A DNA stretch of 63,261 bases, the filler included, from Choristocarpus tenellus KU-1152 (lineage: Eukaryota > Protista > Phaeophyceae), in NCBI GenBank assembly GCA_964200185.2. It is 7 parts of 7 records of this genome, joined end to end, with 100 filler letters (N's around TTAATTAATTAA, not from the genome) between each part and the next. Parts side by side here need not be neighbours in the genome. Positions count along the whole stretch, not along the records: positions 12,250 to 27,953 come from CAXNAD020000945.1; 6 more parts are not named here. One strand, given 5' to 3'. A program made the translations under genes and the position numbers. The notes under the pieces were generated by a model. It ran no database searches. It was not told where the DNA came from and was given only the letters and a program-made list of their open reading frames with translations. This document shows positions 12,250 through 27,953 of this stretch, piece after piece. The number at the start of each line of letters is the position of its first letter. Positions within the stretch are counted from its first letter, which is position 1.

Positions 12250-14727
12250 CATTTCCAAAAAAGGTCATAAAAGAGGCCCTTCTAAGTGCAAATACAGTCG
12301 CAAAAAAACCTTTCGGTACTCTTTTAAGACCGTTTTCGCAAAACAACCATCCTCAATTTTGCGAATCCCCTGTTCAATGTCAAAATCCAAGTGCATCAAA
12401 AAGAGAAAATTGTAAGGACGTCTCTGTAGACAACACATTACGGCATCTGATAAAATATACTAATAAACAATGCCCTTTTCTGTTTCCTCACCCTAAGCCT
12501 AACTTAGGTTCAAAATACAATAATATAGACCAGGTCTAATGCGTCATCAACACACTCGTCAAACTTGAAGAGTACGTCCATGAACGACGCTTGGTGGTCA
12601 AGGAAGGTCTGAACCTCTACATTATTCCCCTTGATACAAAACCAGGTCTGACTGTTTCTCACCCTCAGCATCCATCCCATCTTCTGCATCTCCTTGGGTT
12701 AGGGTTAGAATTACCTAGGGAAAATCAACAGCCTATTGTATTTAAGAGTCCTACTTTCTTCAGATCTCCGCTTTCACATTGGTATGGAGAAAGTGTAAGT
12801 GTGATGAACAAATTTGTCATCAATGACCCCCAAGCCTAACCCTAACCCTAAGTATCCCAACGACTTCAACTGGTGTGTATATAGGTGTGGTAACCAAGAA
12901 CTAGGTTCATTTCTGATCCGTTTTCTAACCAAACCCTAACCCTAATATATACATATTTTGAGGGATTAGATTAACTGAAATCCCAGTTGAAGTGGTAGGG
13001 TTAGGGTTGTAAGGGATGAATCATGTGGGTTCACAGAAGCCGGCAAATGAGAAAGGAGTTCACAGGTAATCAAGTGATATCCGCTGATACATTTCCATTA
13101 TTGCCCCATAGAGGGAAATATTGTACACTTCAACGTAAAAAATGCTACCAAGTAGTATCCTAGTAAGGAAATACACAAAACATCAGAGTGAGGACTGCAC
13201 ACACAAAGGCCAAAATATTATATAATGTAGAGCTGTAGATACAAATAATTTGTGGTTCACTGTTGGGCACAAGATTGCCCAGGGCTATCTACCTAATCAT
13301 GTCCCAGTATGGCATTCCGTAAGAAAGTTACATTGCCTGGTTTCAGAGGAAGTTTTGACAATTTACACCTTAAATGATTAAAAAAAAAATGCCATTCCTA
13401 GCCGTAACCAGCTGTCAACATGGAGGGCATATTTCCAGTCAAACTCACAAATTTTGCATATTCATGTTACTAAGAAATCAACATAAAATAACAGTCGTAG
13501 GAATTAGGGTATCTAAACTTAGTTATCCCACTATAGTCATACTGTGTTTACCATATTAGAAAATCAACACTATGAAATCTATTCCCTAATCTCTCATTAC
13601 CCTCAAAACCATGGAATTGAGCTAAAGAAGAAAATGCAGTCAACAAAAAGTTGTTATTCGATGAACCAGAATCTAATATATAATCTCTTTCTGCTCTTAC
13701 ATCCAAATCAAGTTATGCCTAATTCTTTGGTAGATGAATAACCGAAACCTCTTTTAAATCAACTACTGTTTCTCCTTCATGAAGCATGAACTCATGAAAT
13801 TGTGCACTTCATAGTGAAAGAACATATGAAATGCCCTGACTCATGCCTGGACACAAAGGTATTACGTCAATGCGTATCAGATTCATTAACGTCCTTGATT
13901 AAAGATGAGGGCAAATACTCTCAGCAAAATATGCAACACTACATACTGCAAAAAGTAGCCATCTAACCCTAACCCTAACCCATGCATAAAATGAAGAAAA
14001 AACAACAGTACAATAACCCCAAAAACTTGAAAACTTTAACAGCCTCAGCAATCAACACACAATTCAAAAATCGATAGCTGTATCCTCTAAACCACAAAAC
14101 AAACATTTAAAGCCAATCGAGATAAAATTGGATTTGTAAAACATTTCCTCGTAAGGCAGAGACTCTGCAATTACTGCAACCAGCTACTGACACATACTAA
14201 GATCATAGATATTCGTTTTCTCTGCATCACCGTCAGAAATAACAGAGAGGAAAGTAGAGCATATACTACACAAGTCATACAGTAATAAAAAAAGTCTGCA
14301 ACATGAATGAAATCAACACATGATAGATGCACGTATCAAGACTATCCGTTTGGAAACACGGATCTCAGTGGATAATCTACAGCACCTCCTAAATCAAACC
14401 CAATCTATTGAGAGGACCGTACTAGAATGACACTAACCTAGCTCTAAACCTCCTATTGTCCCGAACAAAGCTGTGCGTTCCACTTGTCTACGTTACCATT
14501 CCCCACCCACATCATCCCTCCCGCACCATCATCCACCAGTGTCATCACATCCTTGAAGTCAACATCTGCCTTTCCTTCCCGAAGCCTCTTCTCCAGTTTG
14601 TCCTCCTGCTCTGTCATGAACTCCCTTAGATCCCCATATGATTTCCCAATACAAACTTTAACTCCAGCTTACAGGTCCCCCTCACCGCCCATCATTCCTT
14701 GAAGAACTTCATCAGTCACTACCCTAG

Positions 14728-14926
14728 CTGTTCGCCGTGTTGAGGTAGATCTTGCAAATTGGACAATAAAATTTAATGTAGCGACTGCTGATAGAAATCA
14801 GATTGCACAACTTTATAAAGAGCTTGAAGATCAGCAAGAAATAATAATAAACTTGCTTAAGGAAAATGGATTACAGGATGATGAAATTCAAATTGGTGTT
14901 GTTGACCATAACTATTATGAATATCG
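14728..14926 (+). other. Inserted fragment of a bacterial-type SIMPL (DUF541) domain gene
   Basis: Open + frame from 14724: LAVRRVEVDLANWTIKFNVATADRNQIAQLYKELEDQQEIIINLLKENGLQDDEIQIGVVDHNYYEYRDE, resembling the recalled SIMPL pattern GL-x-x-R-x-V-x-x-DLA-x-W-x-x-x-F...L-x-x-NG-x-x-x-DEI. AT-rich and flanked by AG on both sides. Removing it restores the ROCO frame ...DISSR/VVTDE. Confidence 0.75.
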
Positions 14927-17900
14927 AGATGAGATATCCGAGATCTCCTCAGCAAGTTCCTCCTTGAACTTGTTAACTAAATCACTCACAGGTATCTCCA
15001 CCCCACCAACAGTCTTGCAAGCCGCCGCAACAATGAAAGCTGTCACCTGGGTGAGAAAAATTGTAAATTATTCAAGACACGGTGTTGAAGAAATGTCGAT
15101 TACTGAGATCAACCTAACCTAGAAAGGCTGGTACCTAGGAAAGTTGCAAGTTCCCAACATACTTCTACAAAATAATTCTAAGTGACCTCATGCAAATTTC
15201 AACCTAGCATTCGTAGTGAGAAGATCAACCATCGGCTACTAATCGCAAAAAACTTACCATATCCAGCTCAATTGCCACCCAGAAGACACTGGTTTTATAC
15301 AGGATTAGAGTACAAGGTGATGCACACCCCAAAAATAGGACATCCCACTACACCATACCTTCGCGTAGATTACGTACCAACCATAAAGCCTTAACAGTTA
15401 CACAGGAGGCTACAACAATTTACTACTATATGCAGACAATGAAGCGAGGGAAAACACAACACCTAAGATAGCCAATGGGTTGGGGTTAGGGTTAGGGTGT
15501 CAATTTGGAAAAAGTATCTACAACAGAGGTCAAAAGTGTTTACCTGCACAACTGGGTACAGCTTCTTCACCCATTCTCGAGTGCCATGGAATGGATACCC
15601 ATTACCATCCAGACCACATGGTATCACCGTATCATCATAAGGGCAAAAGAGGTGAAGTCGCTTCTTTGTCCTGAACACTCCTTCGAAACAATTACATACC
15701 CTCTGAGCCCGATTCTTGACAGAATTACCAGTCACAGCAGTCTCTCTCTCATCGCGAATGGATGTAAGGCTAGGAAATGGGTAGTCCTTATCTAGCACGG
15801 CATTGAGCTTAATCATCATTCCCAGAATGTTGATTTTGAGATTCTCAACGTTCTCTCCCACCATCTCCACCTTCTCTCCCACCAAATCCAACTTCTCCAA
15901 AATTGCACAATGTCTTTTGTCTGCATGTTGCTGCAGTGACTATATCCTCTCCATGACTGCATCCTCTCCTTCAACAGTTCGTGGATCATCGGACCTTTTC
16001 CAGACAAGAAGCCCTGGGAACTGATCTTCGAAGAGCTGCTCTATTATATTTGATAGCTTCAACTCACAATCAGTAACTTCTCTAGACAGTGGCACACCCA
16101 TCACGTGAAACTCAATGCATGATTGTCCGTCCAAGTCAGCCTGATGGTGCAGGTACAACAGTACCTAAGGTCCCCGCATTCTAAATGAAGCTCCATACCT
16201 CCAGCACACATGGAGCTGTAGATCATGCTGAATGCACCGAGCCATTAGCAGCCCAAGTAGACCCGCTGGCATATAAGTTTGTTCCGATAGATAAACACTC
16301 TCAAGCCGCCAGCAATTGTTCAGTAATCCAAACTTTTTCAGGCTTTCCGTCTCGATGGAGGTAGGAAGGCGTACCATCACCATCAGGTTAAGGCTGTTGT
16401 CCAAGGCACTTGTATCCCCATACTGCGTGGGTGGAGCACTTGCAGAAGTGCTCTCAAAAATAGCCCCAAACTCTGACATGGTGCGCAGAAGTCGTTGGAA
16501 GACAACCTCATCCTTGTCCACATCCAAATCACGCCACAAAAAGCGCAAATAGCCAACAGTTAGCCTCCCTGTGATACAGAAGTTGTCATGGACATACTTC
16601 AGATGGATAAAATTAACGCCAGGACGGCTGTTATATTCCTTGGGCTGTGCTATCCAATAGGCCTTCTGTTCTTGACCTGCCAATCTGTGGTCCAAGATTG
16701 CCCGGAGAGGCTTGTTCAGCCAAGATGGGTCAAGATAGAGTATTCCACATGACAGCAGGAATGTACCCTCCGTCTGGTTAAGTTCAACCGCATCCTGCGA
16801 ATCATCAAAAAGGTTATCAAATTGCATCACGGGCAAAGCAAAAAATTAGACAAAAAAAATGTAAACACTTGTCATTGTCTGACCTTTCAGTATATGGGTT
16901 CAAAAGGTTATCCCAAACTTTTTTTTTATTTCAGGAGTTACACTATATAACCTTATGGTCTATGTGGTATCCCTATTAGGTTATTCACTTGACTAGTAAT
17001 GGTAACAATACACCAACCAGTCCCCAACAAGAAAAATTGAAAAAAAATATAAAACAACCCACTTCATCCAAACACAAAGTGAAAACAAGAATAGAAAGCC
17101 TAAAATGCATGCATAGCAAAAACTCCAGAAGGGACAGCACTCGTCTACAATACCCACTGCAGACTTGATAAAGTCAACCCCTTTCAATTTCACTTTGCAC
17201 CACCAAACAAATTTACCACCACAACAATAACAAGTCTTCCTCAAAAGCAAAACTGCCATCATTCTACAAAAATCTCTTGTTGATAAGTTATTCTACCTCT
17301 GGTCTGGTTTAACTCAATCAGATCCAAAAAACAGCACACAGTCATGGACCAATAAAATAAAAATAAATTGGAGAGCGTGCAACATGAAAGCAACAAGTAC
17401 TAAGTAAACCAACCCAAATTCTTTGAAGGGTTGCAAAATCAAACTTTAAGAACTTGTAAGTACATATTAATGTTTCGTAAGCATGGAAATCCAGTAAACC
17501 AACTTTTACACCACTTTCCACTATGACAACTCATTAGCACAAAAATTAAATATAGCAGCAAGCCTTCCTTCATGATACAATATGCTGCCATTCTACAAAA
17601 TTCCATCTTGGTACTCATCATCTACCTTTTCCAAAAAGATAACTCCAATACAAGTTTCAAGAAAGGTACAGTAGGAGAAGTTCCACACCTTTCAGAAATA
17701 GATCTAGTGATGTCTAACCAAGCACATTTTTTTCAATATCAACATCAAAGGTCGTGAACTCTATAGAGGGTCTATATCTCCAGAAAAAGTACACCTAACA
17801 GACATATTCCAAGATTAATGGAAAGTAGAAGTCGCATTGCACTGCCAAAACCACAGTTTCGCCTTGTAGAAGATGCTAACCCTAACCCTAACCTGCCAAC

Positions 17901-19909
17901 AACACAGTTTTGCCTTTACATGATTCTAGTACTTCCAGAGAGTATCTTTATATCAACAACATGCAATTTCCTTGAGTACAGATTTTGAGGACCAAAGGTT
18001 TGTAGGGTAGAAACAGAATTGACTAACCCTAACCCTAACCCTAACCATAATAAATATCATTTCTACGGATCATCATGCCAAATACCATTCAAAATTTAAC
18101 CTCACACTCTCCTCCATTGTCCCAAAAATTTAACTCTCTACGCAATTCAAAAATCCATGCTCTGAGATATTCCAATTTAAAAGTAAGATCAGAAACAAAA
18201 TTAAATTTAAGTCATCTTATTACCCCTTGTAGAATCCTTAATGGACGTGTGATTGGTAAGAAATATACCTAACAGTACAATAATCAATAAATATAAATAA
18301 TATGTTGGATTGAAGGGTAGGTTCTCTTTCATAACAAATTAAATGTAACGAAAAAAATATAATCTTCTAAGACATATTAACCCTAACACTGACCCTAACC
18401 CTATAGCGAAAAGATATATAGAATCTTCCAAGACATATATTAACTCTAACCCTAACCCGATATATATATATATATATATACATATATATCTTACGCTAAG
18501 AGTAGTTTATCCTTAAGACAAGTTAGAAATCAAAACAAAATTGACCATATATAGTGACCATAACAGAAACGGTTGCATACCTTCAGACACGCAGTGACAG
18601 CAGCATCTTCTGCATCACCCTCCCAGTTTCTCTCCTTCCAGATACCTTTCCATCTCCCAACAGCATCCTCCAAATGCAAATACGGCAACATCGTTTGACC
18701 TTCACCCTTGGCATGTGACACCTCACCCGGCTTGTCAGCTGCATTCAAGGGGTCCAACCCATCATGTAGGGCAACCATCAGAGCAGATGCCCTTGCCCAT
18801 CCCATTGGGATAACCTTACCAACAGTGGGAAACAAGCGAGTTCCATCTGGGCCAGGTCTAACTCCATGCATCACAAGCTCCACAATCTTCTTTCGAACAG
18901 CATCCATCCTTCCTCCTCCTGACCGACACGATACAGCCATCACTCCTAAGATGTAAAGGTCCGCAGGTGGTTGAACCCGCTTCATGTTTTCCACACCCAA
19001 CTCCCCCTGCCGCTTAGAACAGATCTTTTCCATCTCTTCACGTTTGACTTTAAGGTGTTCACCAATGAAAAGATCAAGCTTCTTCATCGCACAGTCAACC
19101 TCATCGTCACCCTTCATACAGTCGATATGCGTCCCAACAACCAAAACAGACGAGCCAGGCACCTTGCACAGCAGCAGATCAAGCCAGCTGTAGACAAGCT
19201 TTCCTTCCTCTGACTCTTCATGATAGAACTTGTTGATGTCAACCACAAGAAGGTTTAAGGCGCCAGTGGTAAGAAAAAATGGACACATGGAGTCGTACTC
19301 CTTGTGTGCGCCAAAGTCCCACATCATCAATTCTAGCAGCTCTTCACCATTCGGCTTCCAGGAGTGTACATCCACTCCACGAGTGTGATCTTCAAGAGTG
19401 GTCAAATAGGGCCGTCCATCCAACATACTCCGGGCAAGGCTGGTCTTGCCTGCACAAACCTCGCCAACAAGAACCACCTTCAGCCTGTAGGACTTGGTCG
19501 ACCCAGAACGTTCAAGAGCCTCGTACTATCGAATAATTGCCTCCAAACCACCCTCCACAACCTCTGTTGGAGGACTAACCCATCGGTTGGAGAAAAATTA
19601 GGGTTAGGGTTAAATTAGGCTGTGCCAAACGCATGCACGATCTAAGCCGTATTGGCTGCCTCCTTCGAGAAAACTAATAAGAACAAAGTAAAATATACCC
19701 GACACAGAAGGAAGAGACATTAAGAGTTAGATAAAAGATTGTAAAGCAATGACACAAAACAAAGAGTTATAAAAAGAACTTCCACCACATTCAACATCTT
19801 CCCAACTTCATATACTACATAATATATTACTCAACTGCAGAAATATTATCAGTAGCAAGCATCACTGACAAAATATTGTCCAACTTAGAAATTACCACAA
19901 ATATCAATC

Positions 19910-21524
19910 AGGAGTGGGGTGATAAAGCATGCAAAACGAAAAACACATCTATTCTTACAATCACAAATTCTCAATCACCTTCTATCCTCAGACTAACCAA
20001 ACATCTTCAACCAACCTAGAAAAAACAACGCCATACACAAACAAGAGCAAAAAGAGACCCCTACCACAAAACGAAATACCTCCTCAACATCCTGCCCTGA
20101 CTAATACAACCACAACAAATATACCTACACTCTTGTCCACTACAAACATCACCTCCAGGTACACAACAACCCTCATGCGCACTACATACATCACTCTCCT
20201 GTCAACACATCTAATTGTCACACTAATCAATATCAAACCAACCATGGTCTTGCTCTAGTACTTATACGAAATTGGATTATATCATTTATATATTGCACCA
20301 GTCCAATATTCTTAGGGCACACATCAAAAATATGCATTTTTGACCACACTAGGGTACTTCAACAGAAAACCAAAAAAAAGGAGATACCTTCAAATTCAAC
20401 AAATGTACAACTTCACACTTACCGCTTAATTTATTGAATCCCAAATCTAGGTACGTGAGAGCAGAGAGATTCCCTAGTGACTCCGGGATGCTCCCTGTGA
20501 GAAAAAGAGTTGATTTACGAAAGCCATTCAGGTTTCACAATACACAAACAAACATTAGTCCAGAGTGGGGTGACAAAGCATGCAAAACGAAAACACATCT
20601 ATTCTTACAATCACAAATTCTCAATCACCTTCTATCCTCAGACTAACCAAACATCTTCAACCAACCTACACACAACAACGCCATACACAAACGAGAGCAA
20701 AAAGAGGGACCTACCACAAAACGAAATACCTCCTCAACTATCCTGCCCTGACTAATACAACCACAACTAATATGCTTACACTCTTGTCCACTACAAACAT
20801 CACCTCCAGGTACACAACAACCCTCATGCGCACTACATACATCACTTTCCTGTCAACACATCTGATTGTCACACACTAATCAATATCAAACCAACCATGG
20901 TCTTGCTCTAGTACTGACAAGAAATTGGATTCAATCATTTATATATTGCACCAGTCCAACATTCTTAGGGCACACATCAAAAATATACATTTTTGACCAC
21001 ACTAGGGTACTTCTACAGGAAACCAAACAAAAAGAAGATACCTTCAAATTCAATAAATGTACAACTTCACACTCACCGCTAAATTCATTGAATCCCAAAT
21101 CTAGGTATGTAAGAGCAGAGAGACTCCCCAGTGACTCCGGGATTGCTCCTGTGAGGAAAAGAGTTGATTTACGAAAGCCATTCAGGTTTCACAATACACA
21201 AACAACCATTAGTCAAAAGTGGGGTGACAAAGCATGCAAAACGAAAAACACATCTATTCTTACAATCACAAATTCTTAATCACCTTCTATCCTCAGACTA
21301 ACTAAACATCTTCAACCAACCTATACACAACAACGCCATACACAAACGAGAGCAAAAAGAGGGACCTACGACAAAACAAAATACCTCCTCAACTATCCTG
21401 CCCTGACTAATACAACCACAACCAATATGCCTACACTCTTCTCCCCCACAACATCACCTCCAGGTACACAACAACCCTCATGCGCACTACATACATCACT
21501 CTCCTGTCAACACATCTAATTGTC
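19910..21524 (-). repeat. Tandem 654-bp LRR-exon cassettes (~2.5 units)
   Basis: Near-identical intron+exon units. The exons encode GSIPESLGNLSALTYLDLGFNKLS and GAIPESLGSLSALTYLDLGFNEFS, are 72 nt, phase 1-1, with AG/GT ends. Confidence 0.92.
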
Positions 21525-21697
21525 ACAAGTAAGCCTGGGTACTGTTATCCTCAGGACGTGTGATCTGCATCATGGCACCATGCTCTGACATGGTGTTGAC
21601 CAGGCTTTTGAAAATCGACTGGTCATCATAGTTAACTAGAGCACGCCATAAGAAGCGCAGATACCTAGCAGTCAGCTTGCCAGTCATTATTTTAAGC
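21525..21697 (-). pseudogene. Fragment of a paralogous ROCO COR exon
   Basis: MTGKLTARYLRFLWRALVNYDDQSIFKSLVNTMSEHGAM aligns with the resident ITGRLTVGYLRFLWRDLDVDKDEVVFQRLLRTMSEFGAI but is clearly diverged. Confidence 0.8.
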
Positions 21698-21946
21698 GTA
21701 GGGAAGATTTCTCTGGTTCTTCCTTGATCCATTCCGACGAAAGCTTATTCGGGAGTCCTCTTGATCTAGCCCCCCTCGTCTTGTCCCCCAGCCTCAGGAT
21801 TCCTCATTCGATTTAATACTGTTCATTCCTTCTCCCCTTGTGCCTCCATCTGCCACCTATTTTCTTAACTCCTCAATCTGAACTCTTCCTTCCCTCCTTG
21901 ATACCATCGACAAAACTCATATTACTTCATAAACTTTCCCTTTGAT

Positions 21947-23123
21947 TGGAGAGATGAGGTGTTTGTAGAGAGATTGAAGGATTGAAATATTTTATATTTT
22001 GAATATATATTTTTTGTCTTGCCAATTCATCTTTCAGTGACGAATTTTTCACCTTACCTGTCACACGACACTCACTCATCGATGGTAGATGGTTATCACG
22101 TGCCAAAGAGGTAAATCCAACAAGTAGATTATACACAAATTGCATTTGTTGTCGTTCTGGGGCGTGTGATTGTCCTCGTTCACGGGCGGTCATGGGGACA
22201 GCGACTAGCAGGTTGGAATCATCCCGGAGAGCAGGTGAGTTGTTTTCATGGTGTTTCCGGTGATAGGTTGAGAATGAACATGCCAAACAGAGAACAGCAA
22301 CTAACAAATTTTGTATCGCATTTGTCGCTTGTTGCCCTTCGCTTCTCGACTACAGTCGCGCAACGGGAGATTCTTCTTGAATTCTATGTCTCCACGAATG
22401 GACATCTGTGGTGGAATAATACCGGGTGGAACTCCAATGCCCATGATCTGTCAACGTGGTACGGGATTGAAGTCGACGATGAAGGGTACGTTGTGAAGAT
22501 CAACCTCCCCGAGAACAACCTCAAGGGTAAGATTAGACTGTGGTGTTTTACATTCCAAATTTGTGTGGTGCACGTCCATTTCCTGGTGGCTTCTTGTGTG
22601 GTTGGCTTCAAATTTGTGATGTGTATATCGAAGGGCGCAATAGTGTTGACTCGCTCGTGAAGGTCTTGTACAGATATGAATGATCGAGGAGTTTACACTG
22701 AGCATTCGTGCATGTGTGATGACAAATGGGCCAGTGGCTGTGAGGTTAAAGTCAAATAGTATTGGTGGAGGTTTTGTCCGCAGTAGTGGTCCTAGGAAGG
22801 AATGTGGTATGTGTACATGAGATCATTCTTGACTTCTGCCGTTTTTGAAGGTCAACGATGAGGCGTGTGTTAACATTTGTAGGGGAATATGGCACCTCGA
22901 CTCCTTTCGTAAGTGACAAAAAAATGATTTTTACGATGACGCAAGGGCTCGTCTTCAAAGGTTTGATTTTGGGGATTCTTGTGAAGGGAGATGGAACACA
23001 ACCTATATCGAAAGGTCTTTTGAGGTGGGGTAGACAAAACTGTACAAGAGTGAAGCTGTGCGAGAACTGGACCATTTTGTCGTTGTGATTGGTTGGGTGT
23101 GTCTCAGCTTTGACATCTACCTC
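21947..23123 (+). repeat. Inverted copy A of the ROCO 5' module, with intact exons 22192-22234 and 22356-22526
   Basis: Reverse complement of ~24953-26120. Encodes MGTATSRLESSRRA|VAQREILLEFYVSTNGHLWWNNTGWNSNAHDLSTWYGIEVDDEGYVVKINLPENNLKG (LRRNT) with good splice sites. Confidence 0.88.
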
Positions 23124-24007
23124 TGAAAAGCGTCCGTCAGGCTTTAGTTATGCTTTAGATTACCCCATCTTGAAGTGGTGATCGCGAGTAACCTCTTGCA
23201 CTAAAGTATTTGTGACCAGAATGATTCGGACAGAACATGCAGTACCGGTAGATTGGTGTTCCAATTTTTATCCTGTTTGTGTTTATGTGATGTTTACAAG
23301 TAAAATGTTGGCACATGTATTCAAAATCCGATGAAACATATTTCTGTGTAAATTGTAACTTCCTGAGATAAATTCTGCTACATTCCCTCAACAAAACCTT
23401 TTCTACTTTAGAATGTTCTGTGTACATAATATATTGCTGAAAGCAGAGTATCATTTTTTTTTTTGTTAAATCAGTGAATGAGCAAAAGCATACCATCCTC
23501 TCTGAGGGATTGGTACTTGAGATGAAATCTTTTAAAGCATCTGTTGGAAGGCATTGATTATCAGCTTATCACTGGCTTATAGTTTTGATTTGTCATATTT
23601 CAAGTTTCTGGAAATCTCGATGAATTGATTTGATATCTTTACTTTATTGCATACCCTAATATGATAGCAAACAGAATGTTTATGTCTGGCACTTGAGAAT
23701 CAGGCCAGAAGGAGACCAGTAAGGATTACAAAACTAATAGAGGAACAGACAATTAATTGTGGCTGTGCTTCTGAAGTGGTCGAGTTGTAGGTACATGTAG
23801 ATTTGCACTGATATCCGTTGATACAATTTAGAGTAGTTAGGTTAAATAGTACCATTTTAGCTTTCTGTAGAGAGATTTTTGAATTTTCTAGTCAACATAT
23901 TTTTGTTCCATATCTGACCGAAGGTGCTCTTGGTATGATAAACTGTCTTGTAGTGTGTAGTGAAAGCTAACCATTAACATTATTAGAACACCCATAATTT
24001 TTTGTTG

Positions 24008-24340
24008 GGGTACTTCAACAGGAAACCAAAAAAAAAGATACCTCTAAATTCAACAAATCTCCAACCTCACACTCATCGCTGAGTTCATTGTACTCCAAAT
24101 CTAGGTGTGTGAGAGCAGAGAGATTCCCCAGTGACTCCGGGATGCTCCCTGTGACGAAAAGAGTTGATTTAAGAAAAGCCATTCAGGTTTCACAATACAC
24201 AAACAAACATTAGTCCAGAGTGGGGTGACAAGCATTCAAAACGAAAAACACATCTATTCTTACAATCACAAATTCTCAATCACCTTCTATCCTCAGACTA
24301 ACCAAACATCTTCAACCAACCTATCCACAACAACGCCATT
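24008..24340 (-). repeat. Isolated partial LRR cassette (exon 24148-24077, donor GT>AT)
   Basis: Same cassette as 19910-21524. The exon encodes GSIPESLGNLSALTHLDLEYNELS and is followed by ATGAGT instead of GTGAGT. Confidence 0.88.
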
Positions 24341-24952
24341 GACAAGGTAACCTATTCACACTAATCAATATTAACCTAACCAAAATGATGGTTCTAATCA
24401 CCAGTATTGATGCACTACGCGGTTATGGTGTGGTTAGCATCCTACAATAGCACTAGAATTTTATTTTCTGGCAAGATGTGTAGATGTGCCGTTTATACTA
24501 CACCTTTAATAGGAGAGAATAGCAGAATGTTGAGAAAAATGAAGCGCCGTATTTTAGGTGTTCCCGTTGAATTTGTAGAACTGAGTAGTCAAATAGTGTA
24601 GATAACAAAAACCGTTTTTTTGGTGTATCTTTCATGCCTTATTATTTGGAGCACACAAAGTAAAACTGGTATCGAACATGCACTCTTTGCAACATTCTGT
24701 TGAAAGTTTATGATATGTGTTTCTCTTACAGGAATGAAAAAACACTGAGAAATTCGTGGAACAGAAGATTTTATCAGGTGAGAAACAAAAAAATCACACG
24801 TTAACTATCATCAGTAACATTATCTTGTGCAAGGGAAAGGAGTCGCACCTACTAAAACATGTGTTCCACAATTGATAATATAGGAGCATTGTATAAAACT
24901 TTGAACAAAATTTCAATCTAATGTATAAATGAAAGCCAGAAAGTGGATTTCA

Positions 24953-26120
24953 TGAGGTAGATGTCAAAACTAAGACATACACAACACATCAGAACAACAA
25001 AAAGTGTAGTTCTCACACAGCTTCACTGTGGTGCAGGTTTGTGTACTCCGCTATAACATACCGTACAACAGAGCTAATGTTCAGTCTTTCCTAATGAGAA
25101 TCCGCAAACTAAACCTGGAAAGTCGAGCTATGGCGTCATCGGACAAATCAATTTTCTCTCACTTCGAAAAGTGGTCTATCTGATGTGTTGCCTTACAAGT
25201 GTTAACACACGCTGCATTCACGACCTCTGAAATCGACAGAAGTTAAGTACCATCTCATGTAGACATATCTTGATACCAACAATAACGTGCAAAAAAACTT
25301 GACCAATACGATGTGATTCTGACGCCACAGTCAACGGTCCATGTGTCAATATACATGCACGAATGTTCAGTGTAAACTCGTTGATAATCACATCTGTACA
25401 ATACATCCACGAGCGAGTCAATAACATTGCGCCCGTTGATACATACATCAAATACACGAAGCCACCAGGAAATGGATGTGCACCACACAAATTTGGAATG
25501 TAAAACACGGCTGTCAAATCTTACTCTTGAGGTTGTTCTCGGGGAGGTTGATCTTCACAACGTACCCTTCCTTCATCGTAGACTTCAATCCCGTACCACG
25601 TTGACAGATCATGGGCATTGGAGTTCCACCCGGTATTATTCCACCACAGATGTCCATTCGTGGAAGCATAGAATTCAAGAAGAATCTCCCGTTTCGTGGC
25701 TGTAGTCGACAAGCGAAAGGCAACAAGCGACAAATGCGATATAAAATTTGTTAGTTGCTGTTCTCTGTTTGCCATTTTCATTCTCAAATTCTCAACCTAT
25801 CACCTGAAACACCATGAAAACAACCCACCTGCTCTCTCAGATGATTCCAACCTGCTAGCCGTCGTCCCCATGACCGTCCATGAACGTGGACAATCACATG
25901 CCCCAGGACGACAACAAATGCAATTTGGGTGTAATCTACTTGTTGGCTCTACCTCTTTGGTGCGTGATAACCATCTACCATCAACAATGAGCAAGTGAGG
26001 TGAATGGGTATGGTGAAAAATTCGTCACTGAAAGATGAATTGGAAAGATGTAAAAAAATATTCAAAATATAAAATATTTCAATTCTTCTAACTCTCTACA
26101 AACACCTCACCTCTCCAACC
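24953..26120 (-). repeat. In-line copy B of the ROCO 5' module (frameshifted LRRNT exon)
   Basis: MGTTASRLESSERA|ATKREILLEFYASTNGHLWW... with an extra CTTC near 25570 relative to copy A. Confidence 0.88.
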
Positions 26121-26159
26121 AAATTTACAAAATCGAGGAAATATCACTAACCCACCAAA

Positions 26160-26520
26160 ATAAGAACAGGTTCCGTCCACGTTCTAGAAAAATCGGACAA
26201 TAATCCAGCATATTTTCCTCTTACATGTCCACTAGGTATTGAACCAATCCATATCCGGTGTCTAGACCAGGCCAAACTTTCTCTTACATGTCCGGAACAT
26301 GTCCAATGCGTATTGTACCGGTCCATGTCCAGCCACACAGGGTCAAGTATTTTTTAACATGTCCAGATCATGGCCACTGGGCATCGTACCAGTCCGTGTC
26401 CACCTACCACAGATTAACTTTTTCCCTTGCATATCCGGACCATAACCCCCCACCAGTTCATTTTCTTTCTGGTGTGTCCGAACCATGTCCACGACATGTT
26501 CTCCAAATCCAGTTGTCAGT
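26160..26520. repeat. Tract dense in (A)TGTCC/GGACA motifs, possibly a DNA-transposon subterminal region
   Basis: Many TGTCC/ATGTCC/ATATCCGG motifs in ~360 bp and no credible ORF. Confidence 0.45.
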
Positions 26521-27142
26521 TTAATTTGGCCTTTCCATGCGAATAATGAAAATGTGTTCGACATATTGAAGGATAAGTTATACTCCATTATATGCATATA
26601 GAGCACTCTTTCTAATTATCTCCAGACCTCCTTGGTTCGAAATCATGGGGAACTTACACTTCTGTATATATTATTATACCCTCTAATATTTTGGATGTGT
26701 AAGAGGGAAAAAAACAAAGCAATATCACAAGGACTAATGTAAAAGTTTTTAAATGTGAAAGATGTCTCTCGATAATATATTTAAGATTTTAGTATCTGCT
26801 ATACTACAATCACTCCATTAGAGCTTGGAAATTACAGCTATGTGTACATTGCTGCTATGCCTCCAACCTATCTCACCCTTACACAACTGGGTGAGGAGCT
26901 AGGGAACCATCCCAAGAATCTGACAGGCCACTCCTTGCCCATCCGGTTGGAGTCTCTAGCTTGAAACACATGAAATTATCTCGAGAGAGTCACTTGTATA
27001 GTGAAAGACACTATGTGTCATAAGCGGGTTATGATTGCCCCTTTCTTCCTGTAACCTCCCGCCCCTCTCCCCTTTACTCCGTGTGTAGCCAACTCATCCA
27101 GAAAACTGTTACAACGCAGAAGTCTTGGTAGGACCTCCATGT

Positions 27143-27575
27143 TAAAGCATGCTCCAGAACTCACCTTCACAGAATGTGTAGCTCTATTTCAACGACCTTA
27201 AAACGACGCTACTGGGGTATTTCCACAGTTGATAGTCATGTGCGGGTGTCAGCAACTCTTCTCTCGATGCTGCACTTAGTGCTTAGCTCAAAGCTTCTAA
27301 TGTTTTAATCGAGAAATAAAGAGTGAATCTCAAGACGTACTTAGGTGACTGTCAAAATATTCTTTATTTGCATCATCCACCCGAATTCTACAGGCTGAAA
27401 GTTGAAAGACATCTGCCAGCCATTGTATACGTACTCAAATTATAAATCTTTCCTGCAACTTCTAAGAAATAAGCATATATTCTGTAAGGTCACCTGTTTA
27501 CTATAAATCTCGTATACTGCTCGCGCTTGCTAGAACACGAGAAGAAATGCTCGTGCTATTTGCCTGTAACAAAAC
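27143..27575. repeat. One diverged unit of a ~410-bp repeat family
   Basis: Reverse-complement similarity to the tandem units at ~47520-48370 (GTATACTGCTCGCGC..TTG...GAAGAAAT.CTCG.GCTATT.GCC). Confidence 0.65.
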
Positions 27576-27932
27576 CTTTCCATTTGGATATCGAGGCGCC
27601 CAAAACTTTCCACCGCGAATGTGTTGAGGTTAAAACTAACCCTAAACCTACTTAGAGCAGATAGAACTTAAGTGTTTAGGGGATAGGAGACACCTTGGAC
27701 AATGACAAAACATTATCATAGGTGACCAGGCAGAGCTCCATACATGGGAGGCTTTTCTCCTTGTTTTATGAGGAAAATGTGGGTGAATTCACTTGGCAAG
27801 ATTCTGCAGAGGCAGTTCTTCAACGTCGCACTGCTATATTTCCACAATAAGTCTCAGAAATTGCGAAATGAAAGACATTCATGCGGTTTTTTCATGTTGC
27901 AGCACAACTTACGATTCCTTGATCAAGAAACA

Positions 27933-27953
27933 GACCCAAAGTATCTGGGGGGG
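27933..27953. mobile_element. MITE family A terminus at a contig end
   Basis: GACCCAAAGTATCTGGGGGGG directly before the linker. Confidence 0.7.

Follow-up and report, generated by a model that had tools for sequence, protein, structure and literature searches.

How does a short stretch of bacterial coding sequence, still free of stop codons in its own frame, come to lie antisense in the last exon of a candidate immune-receptor gene of a brown alga? The question is raised by a window of 63,261 nucleotides, filler included, that joins seven parts from seven records of the Choristocarpus tenellus KU-1152 assembly GCA_964200185.2 (164 Mb in 27,310 contigs), and more precisely by its positions 12250–27953, which correspond to the 15,704 bp of contig C945 (CAXNAD020000945.1). 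Choristocarpus tenellus is an early-branching brown alga. The minus strand of C945 encodes a brown-alga-type LRR-Roc (ROCO) gene, a candidate immune receptor, whose last exon (14453–15046) contains 208 bp of a Rickettsiaceae SIMPL/DUF541 gene (14727–14934), in sense orientation on the plus strand and absent from six paralogs of the exon. We consider it very probable that this is Rickettsiaceae DNA captured into the C. tenellus nuclear genome by end-joining repair of a break in that exon.

The insert and its empty site

The limits of the insert can be read from related copies of the exon in the same genome. A DNA search of the assembly with positions 14300–15300 of the window returned at least ten paralogous loci, and in six of them (C23009, C1068, C18317, C981, C1841 and C16275, 84–96% identical) the two flanks abut, with 14727–14934 missing. 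The empty site is the same in all six, ...CAGTCACTACCC-TA-TCCGAGATCTCC... (in short, ACCC-TA-TCCGAG), and the occupied site reads ...ACCC-TA-[208 bp]-TA-TCCGAG..., with 210 extra bases in all: the single TA of the empty site is found both on the left (14725–14726) and on the right (14935–14936), where host exon sequence restarts in the paralog alignment. Genuine ROCO exon sequence is thereby present on both sides of the insert, which is 2.5 kb away from one end of C945 and 13 kb away from the other, and its GC content is 34%, as in the bacteria described below; that of the flanks is 42–45%. A preliminary description of this DNA had recognised an AT-rich foreign insert in the last ROCO exon, and this part of it stands; the length of 199 bp and the AG/AG flanks given there do not, the six paralogs defining 208 bp between TA and TA. 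The same description had the insert split the codons DISSR/VVTDE, which is incorrect, as the uninterrupted protein reads ...EEISD-R-VVTDE... and ISSR comes from the insert.

What type of event leaves such a structure? Neither terminal inverted repeats (TIRs), longer direct repeats nor poly-A were found at the insert ends (14727 and 14934), in agreement with the earlier statement that TIRs, poly-A and a GT donor are missing, and GT...AG boundaries are lacking as well. A cut-and-paste DNA transposon or miniature inverted-repeat transposable element was rejected, given the absence of TIRs and the presence of a single copy in 164 Mb, the TA duplication alone fitting such an element. A spliceosomal intron was also rejected: on the minus strand the insert begins with TCTCAT... 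and ends with ...CAGC, and inspection by eye gave no in-frame donor/acceptor pair. The structure is consistent with the end-joining repair proposed from the outset, in that TIRs are absent, TA is duplicated (2 bp) and one junction may show CT(A) microhomology. At this left junction, CTA (C14724 plus the left TA) matches at two of its three bases the Leu codon CTT of the bacterial relatives, the genomes G001 and G059 both reading CTT GC., and at the other end the final base of the insert fits the first base of the following codon (Asn in G059). A microhomology of 2–3 bases is possible at the left end, with none at the right end.

Integration of Tc1/mariner elements is characterised by duplication of a TA, and the exact TA...TA duplication around an insert without TIRs could be taken to mean that a TA-targeting element of this type had been excised, and that the TA-flanked break it left behind was patched with rickettsial DNA. 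We find this unlikely, as neither remnants of a transposon nor footprint bases can be seen, and a 2-bp duplication also results from any 2-nt staggered break. The left TA could moreover be derived from the donor (the relatives' CTT and CTA being synonymous), and another rickettsial piece of this genome, on contig C165, has an 8-bp flanking repeat instead.

Donor, age and damage to the ROCO copy

The plus-strand frame that starts at 14724 is open for 70 codons, or 139 codons when the flanks are included, and the other two plus-strand frames of the insert are stop-rich. Compared with Pfam, the 70-aa fragment matches SIMPL/DUF541 (PF04402) with 18.5 bits (E = 0.0025, profile positions 7–71 of 205), which is below the gathering threshold of 25.2 bits, although a fragment of 28% would hardly be expected to reach it; NCBIfam gave no match for the insert peptide. 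The family assignment is carried by close homology to a full-length protein: the insert corresponds to residues 54–123 of the 249-aa SIMPL protein of the Rickettsiaceae genome G059, with 84% identity, and this homologue is encoded by an intact 249-codon gene scoring 56.4 bits, above the Pfam cut-off.

To which bacteria does the fragment belong? Pattern and tblastn searches of one genome per bacterial species gave a sole relative, the Rickettsiaceae metagenome-assembled genome (MAG) CBDBTV010000017.1 (G001), which matches 68 residues at 87% identity (E = 3e-38). When 130 genomes of Rickettsiaceae species were compared, G001 (87%), G059 (84%, over all 70 residues) and G076 (74%) alone came close, the rest reaching at most 53%; at the DNA level, the insert and its relatives are 81–83% identical. 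A word-index search of a 5.8-billion-protein database with the G059 SIMPL protein as query listed 120 of 1,205 SIMPL proteins, and among the matches listed, the closest to the insert are two Tara Oceans marine-metagenome proteins (87% for P0031, and 84%), followed by the G076 protein (74%), all other SIMPL proteins being at 61% or less; the P0031, P0032 and P0033 clusters carry PF04402. A tblastn search against plasmids yielded only a 31% Photobacterium match. In the C. tenellus assembly itself, the insert is single-copy and no other SIMPL/PF04402 gene was detected. An origin from a host or organellar gene was rejected on these grounds (74–87% identity to the Rickettsiaceae clade, no SIMPL elsewhere in the assembly), and the lineage can be assigned, with 74–87% identity to Rickettsiaceae versus at most 61% to the other SIMPL proteins retrieved. 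Several points of the preliminary description, namely the open frame on the strand opposite to ROCO, the bacterial SIMPL/DUF541 identity, best matches in bacteria rather than in an algal repeat or gene copy, and an associated bacterium as donor, are all borne out, and this bacterium can now be described as intracellular-type, of the family Rickettsiaceae.

Nothing identical to the insert was found in public data, so the true donor is unsampled, and it appears to be a member of a marine Rickettsiaceae clade that is known from MAGs and Tara Oceans contigs alone. Its position within this clade was not resolved by a maximum-likelihood tree on 198 nt, and the ebo-operon marker PF01261, which matched 0 of the 130 Rickettsiaceae genomes, does not discriminate for or against a Phycorickettsia affinity. 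In G001, the SIMPL gene (L002:2842–3593, that is G001:C17) is broken into two reading frames where a 2-bp difference follows ...YEYR, and is a pseudogene unless the MAG contains a sequencing error here; an intact 249-aa SIMPL protein is encoded by identical Tara Oceans contigs.

When did the fragment stop evolving as a bacterial gene? Its 70 codons contain no stop or indel. Nei-Gojobori ratios of nonsynonymous to synonymous change are 0.04 and 0.09 for the insert compared with G001 and G059, and 0.05–0.11 for comparisons of bacterium with bacterium. The 24 sites at which G001 and G059 agree and the insert differs are distributed 4/4/16 over the three codon positions, and the insert's own branch (0.085–0.11) is about as long as those of its living relatives. 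The word pristine used in the preliminary description is therefore fair, with no stop or indel, a ratio in the bacterial range and a third-position bias. On the host side, the flanks of the closest insert-free paralog are 96% identical, which leaves room for no more than about 2% of change since the insertion, provided that no gene conversion has occurred between paralogs. The insertion would thus be younger than the approximately 4% divergence of this ROCO copy from its nearest paralog, and the sequence was still functioning as a bacterial gene when nearly all of its 18% DNA divergence from the known relatives accumulated.

These data also bear on the idea of an ancient fossil, in which an early transfer remained intact through slow nuclear mutation while the bacterial lineage diverged. 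A DNA divergence of about 18% from every known relative would agree with it, as would the wide range of identities among the other rickettsial pieces of the genome (72–98%), suggesting transfers over a long period. This history is nonetheless improbable for the insert on C945: the nearest insert-free paralog, with its 96% identity in the flanks, bounds the age (assuming no gene conversion), and a branch length like that of living relatives, combined with the third-position bias, points to mostly bacterial evolution.

For the ROCO gene, the insertion is disruptive. Stops on the ROCO strand within the insert had been announced from the first inspection, and this is confirmed by direct reading, the first in-frame minus-strand stop being the TAA at 14915–14917, so that the product would end with ...EEISD-ISSRYS. 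A second and independent lesion lies downstream on the same strand, at 14669–14671, where a nonsense TAA replaces the GAA (Glu) found in all six paralogs; it is private to this ROCO copy, and mimics a 'gtaagc' splice donor. An intron starting with this 'gtaagc' after ...GEGDL was considered and ruled out by the GAA present at that codon in all six paralogs, which means that the last exon runs unbroken from 15046 to 14453. Given the stops in the insert and the separate nonsense mutation, this ROCO copy is a pseudogene, or else a variant with a truncated C-terminus. The C16275 and C1841 paralogs carry in-frame stops of their own, and pseudogenes seem to be numerous in this ROCO subfamily.

The insert is unlikely to have any function of its own, because it has neither promoter nor start codon, is missing 53 codons at the beginning of the gene and 126 at its end, and is placed antisense in a dead or truncated copy.

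The host gene itself is a brown-algal LRR-Roc gene, as the preliminary description had it, with the insert inside its last exon, an identification that draws on the Roc domain, the LRR cassettes and the paralog alignment. All its exons are on the minus strand. The last one, continuous in the paralog alignment, extends over 14453–15046, from the acceptor ...cccag/GTG to a TAG stop at 14453–14455. The exon at 18530–19477 contains the Roc GTPase domain of the ROCO family (Pfam Roc PF08477, E = 4.4e-13), and its Atlas neighbours are Roc/COR-A clusters. A large open reading frame (ORF) forms an exon 3' of Roc at 16165–16836, in the position expected for COR; no Pfam match to COR was obtained at E ≤ 0.01 on this exon or on 15463–15900, the ROCO exons having been searched one at a time. 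COR is also undetected in some brown-algal ROCOs (PMC11378527). N-terminal LRRs, one per exon, are provided by two repeated LRR-exon cassettes at 20352–21188 (20352–20534 and 20934–21188), with motifs such as ...TGAIPESLGSLSALTYLDLGFNEFSG, recognised by eye and by regular expression; one LRR per exon is the layout of brown-algal ROCO genes (PMC11378527). The cassettes are about 650 bp apart, and similar long plus-strand open frames occur in the same region (19900–21300) at 19929–20258 and 20580–20879, an arrangement that is the layout expected from duplication or shuffling of LRR exons. Tandem Repeats Finder reported nothing in C945, the cassettes going unreported because their period exceeds 500. 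Further along, a plus-strand ORF at 22166–22660 bears near its N-terminus a motif of the kind usual in algal LRR proteins (...NNTGWNSNAHDLSTWYGIEVDDEGYVVKINLPENNLKG) and has no Pfam match; another LRR or ROCO gene, in divergent orientation, may begin here.

Rickettsial DNA elsewhere in the genome

Is the insert on C945 an isolated accident? The host genome was scanned with three 20-kb stretches of G059 (60 kb in total). The insert itself came back with the first stretch, at 82% DNA identity, and serves as a positive control; together the three stretches revealed about ten further pieces of 55–340 bp on other contigs, four with the first stretch, one (weak) with the second and five with the third, a count that is approximate since only the best candidates were scored. 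The pieces include a 156-bp fragment spanning the stop of mnmE and the start of xerC/D on C15815 (89% identity), and some 340 bp of dksA (C2395:2613–2951; L033 1440–1778), a piece interrupted by frameshifts and in-frame stops, which is 56% identical to G059 in protein and 72% in DNA and is an older, decayed rickettsial insert. Two pieces come from the NAD-glutamate dehydrogenase gene, one of about 190 bp (C165:13049–13190; L034 1490–1678) with the direct repeat AGACCTCT on both sides, which could be an 8-bp target-site duplication or due to chance, and one of 77 bp on C1543, found with the first stretch. The third stretch gave cvpA twice, lpxI, lpxA and a transporter gene. Identities range from 72 to 98%, and one 130-bp cvpA fragment (C14103:3498–3627), at 98% to G059, is far closer than the others (72–91%), meaning either that donors differed or that some transfers are very recent. 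No long collinear rickettsial match was found in the 60-kb scan, so the pieces are fragments and not symbiont contigs. Extrapolated to the whole genome, their number would be roughly of the order of a few hundred. The plastid genome is contig C1; its rbcL-rbcS operon is of the red type, and both encoded proteins match NCBI records of Choristocarpus tenellus exactly, in accordance with the identity of the host.

Some of these sequences are patchworks. On C1543 (8816–12980; L046 2816–6980), about 4.2 kb consist of at least 25 abutting tiles of 40–125 bp, each 76–97% identical to scattered, unlinked places in many Rickettsiaceae genomes, and containing no tRNA or rRNA. The tiles recur with 80–100% identity on 18 further host contigs (for example C8338:4895–4970, C25635:2305–2371, C1792:3896–3958 and C447:17577–17808), and are also repeated inside C1543 itself, some of them inverted, with a palindrome of about 104 bp (C1543:11006–11109 among other places) that gives a weak miRNA-precursor-like Rfam match on both strands. 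Such re-used snippets hint at templated synthesis, and a hairpin of this type could yield small RNAs. Similarly, C15815:3217–3956 (L032 1310–2049) harbors four rickettsial pieces placed end to end and drawn from unlinked donor loci (a TPR_12-like piece, the mnmE/xerC-D junction, and pieces of 110 bp and 290 bp), three of whose junctions show overlaps of 3–4 bp. By their structure, these patchworks probably arose by end joining of shattered DNA, or by templated synthesis of the polymerase-theta type in which the template is switched. Among nuclear copies of mitochondrial and plastid DNA (NUMTs and NUPTs), mosaic ones are a familiar example of such patchworks.

Could all of this be an artefact of assembly or library preparation, with reads from a contaminant or a symbiont chimerically joined into host contigs? 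The assembly is fragmented into 27,310 contigs, in a species that the genome paper treats as a long-read assembly, and very short mosaic tiles could in principle be ligation concatemers; non-axenic cultures were used, and bacterial contigs needed filtering out (bioRxiv 10.1101/2024.02.19.579948). A random chimera would not, however, join flanks that are exactly adjacent in six paralogs, with their orientation kept and 2 bp duplicated. Other pieces are decayed (the stops and frameshifts of dksA) or recur at 80–100% on many contigs, and the assembly contains no collinear symbiont sequence, all of which makes an artefact very improbable.

Does the receptor locus attract foreign DNA? The preliminary description had suggested a break-prone receptor locus with a preference for it, and this is not supported here: no ROCO exon was found within 1.5 kb at the nine other piece loci examined, and C945 holds no second rickettsial piece. 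The event is not ROCO-specific, as far as a small sample without a formal enrichment test can tell. A more elaborate version would be an adaptive capture, in which ROCO loci preferentially take up symbiont DNA, and antisense transcripts give rise to small RNAs directed against the bacterium, forming a nuclear 'memory' akin to the piRNA clusters that endogenous viral elements feed. The insert is indeed antisense to a candidate immune-receptor gene, and the C1543 mosaic, with its inverted, re-used tiles and the palindrome of about 104 bp, has the potential to form hairpin RNA. With nine other loci away from any ROCO exon, one piece only on C945, a ROCO copy that is doubly disabled, and brown-algal ROCO families that are pseudogene-rich (PMC11378527), we judge such a capture extremely improbable. 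Equally hard to credit is its genome-wide form, an archive of hundreds of tiles, some in receptor genes or inverted mosaics, that would be transcribed into anti-bacterial small RNAs.

Mode of capture, precedents and meaning

How might such DNA have entered the nuclear genome? In the scenario that we favor, bacteria that live or lyse within the cell would release DNA that reaches the nucleus, repeatedly over time. A break would arise inside the last exon of the LRR-Roc gene, and rickettsial DNA would be ligated or copied as filler at this double-strand break, through non-homologous or microhomology/polymerase-theta-type end joining, which would be the same route as for NUMTs, NUPTs and Wolbachia nuclear inserts. 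The pair of TA dinucleotides may then stem from the fill-in of a 2-nt staggered break, from a TA-targeting transposon that left its footprint on excision, or in part from the donor.

Several points weigh against this scenario. The junctions are those of the assembly, which is fragmented (27,310 contigs). Empty sites were found in paralogs of 84–96% identity only, and no empty allele was found. With the true donor unsampled, the TA pair may be a target-site duplication or donor-derived microhomology. A 20-kb control scan with a distant Rickettsiaceae genome (G128) also matched plastid and conserved genes as well as the C1543 mosaic, and with this unclean control the fragment count is approximate. 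Finally, the species is listed among the long-read assemblies in the genome paper, and bacterial contigs were removed from the published assemblies (bioRxiv 10.1101/2024.02.19.579948), so the lack of symbiont contigs says nothing about a present-day bacterium in the strain.

Are there precedents for a transfer of this type? Wolbachia and organelles provide well-known examples of endosymbiont-to-nucleus transfer, and for algae and Rickettsiaceae there are only a handful of cases. Like the Wolbachia inserts (nuwts) of insects and nematodes, the C. tenellus pieces represent DNA of a Rickettsiales endosymbiont in the nucleus, mostly non-functional and consisting of fragments of differing age. Wolbachia transfers are kilobase-to-megabase blocks; here, the donor is a marine Rickettsiaceae, the host a brown alga, and the pieces measure 40–340 bp and are often mosaic. 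In size and structure they resemble NUMT and NUPT filler, which is short, devoid of TIRs, associated with 0–4 bp of microhomology or a small duplication, sometimes mosaic and possibly inserted in genes, with the difference that the source is here bacterial and that no matching copy exists elsewhere in the assembly. The case described in Volvox concerns a syntenic block of about 9 kb with four genes, unlike the 208-bp exon fragment of a single gene and the scattered shards reported here, and its host is a green alga, Choristocarpus being a stramenopile.

Closer to brown algae, transfers from Phycorickettsia to eustigmatophytes (PMC6092422, PMC6367104) similarly reflect gene traffic from Rickettsiaceae to ochrophytes, taken as a sign of long partnership; they are functional (an ebo operon in the plastid genome, a nuclear gene for a plastid-targeted ACP), in contrast to the gene-disrupting, non-functional fragment on C945. 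A 'Candidatus Megaira'-like genome, MegNdeciBESST, was recovered from the genome project of the brown alga Nemacystus decipiens (PMC10132079). It similarly places Rickettsiaceae in brown-algal sequencing material, and is rich in TPR and ankyrin ORFs, to be compared with the TPR_12-like piece on C15815, but it is a bacterial genome bin, and the text of that paper mentions no integration and does not contain the word 'nuclear' (PMC10132079). The fern Haplopteris ensiformis (PMC10027690) provides another example of Rickettsia-like DNA inside the genome of a photosynthetic eukaryote, where the recipient is the mitochondrial genome. The literature searched gave no link between Choristocarpus and Rickettsia-like bacteria, nor any endosymbiont-to-nucleus DNA transfer in brown algae.

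What can be learned from such pieces? The insert on C945 is a single clean and datable insertion whose empty site is preserved in paralogs, offering a view of the mechanism at base-pair resolution, and the mosaics of 40–125-bp tiles are natural data on how breaks are patched by end joining or templated synthesis in a stramenopile. For annotators, there is a reason for caution, as short bacterial ORFs inside algal genes can be true integrations and not contamination. The interest nevertheless lies mainly in the whole-genome picture, and less in the ROCO locus itself. The shards scattered throughout the genome point to a present or past intracellular Rickettsiaceae partner of Choristocarpus, and as 'fossil' tiles they provide a route to reconstructing the history of this partner. 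On balance, it seems somewhat probable that these tiles are inert and record a long and otherwise undocumented intracellular association of Rickettsiaceae with this brown-algal lineage.

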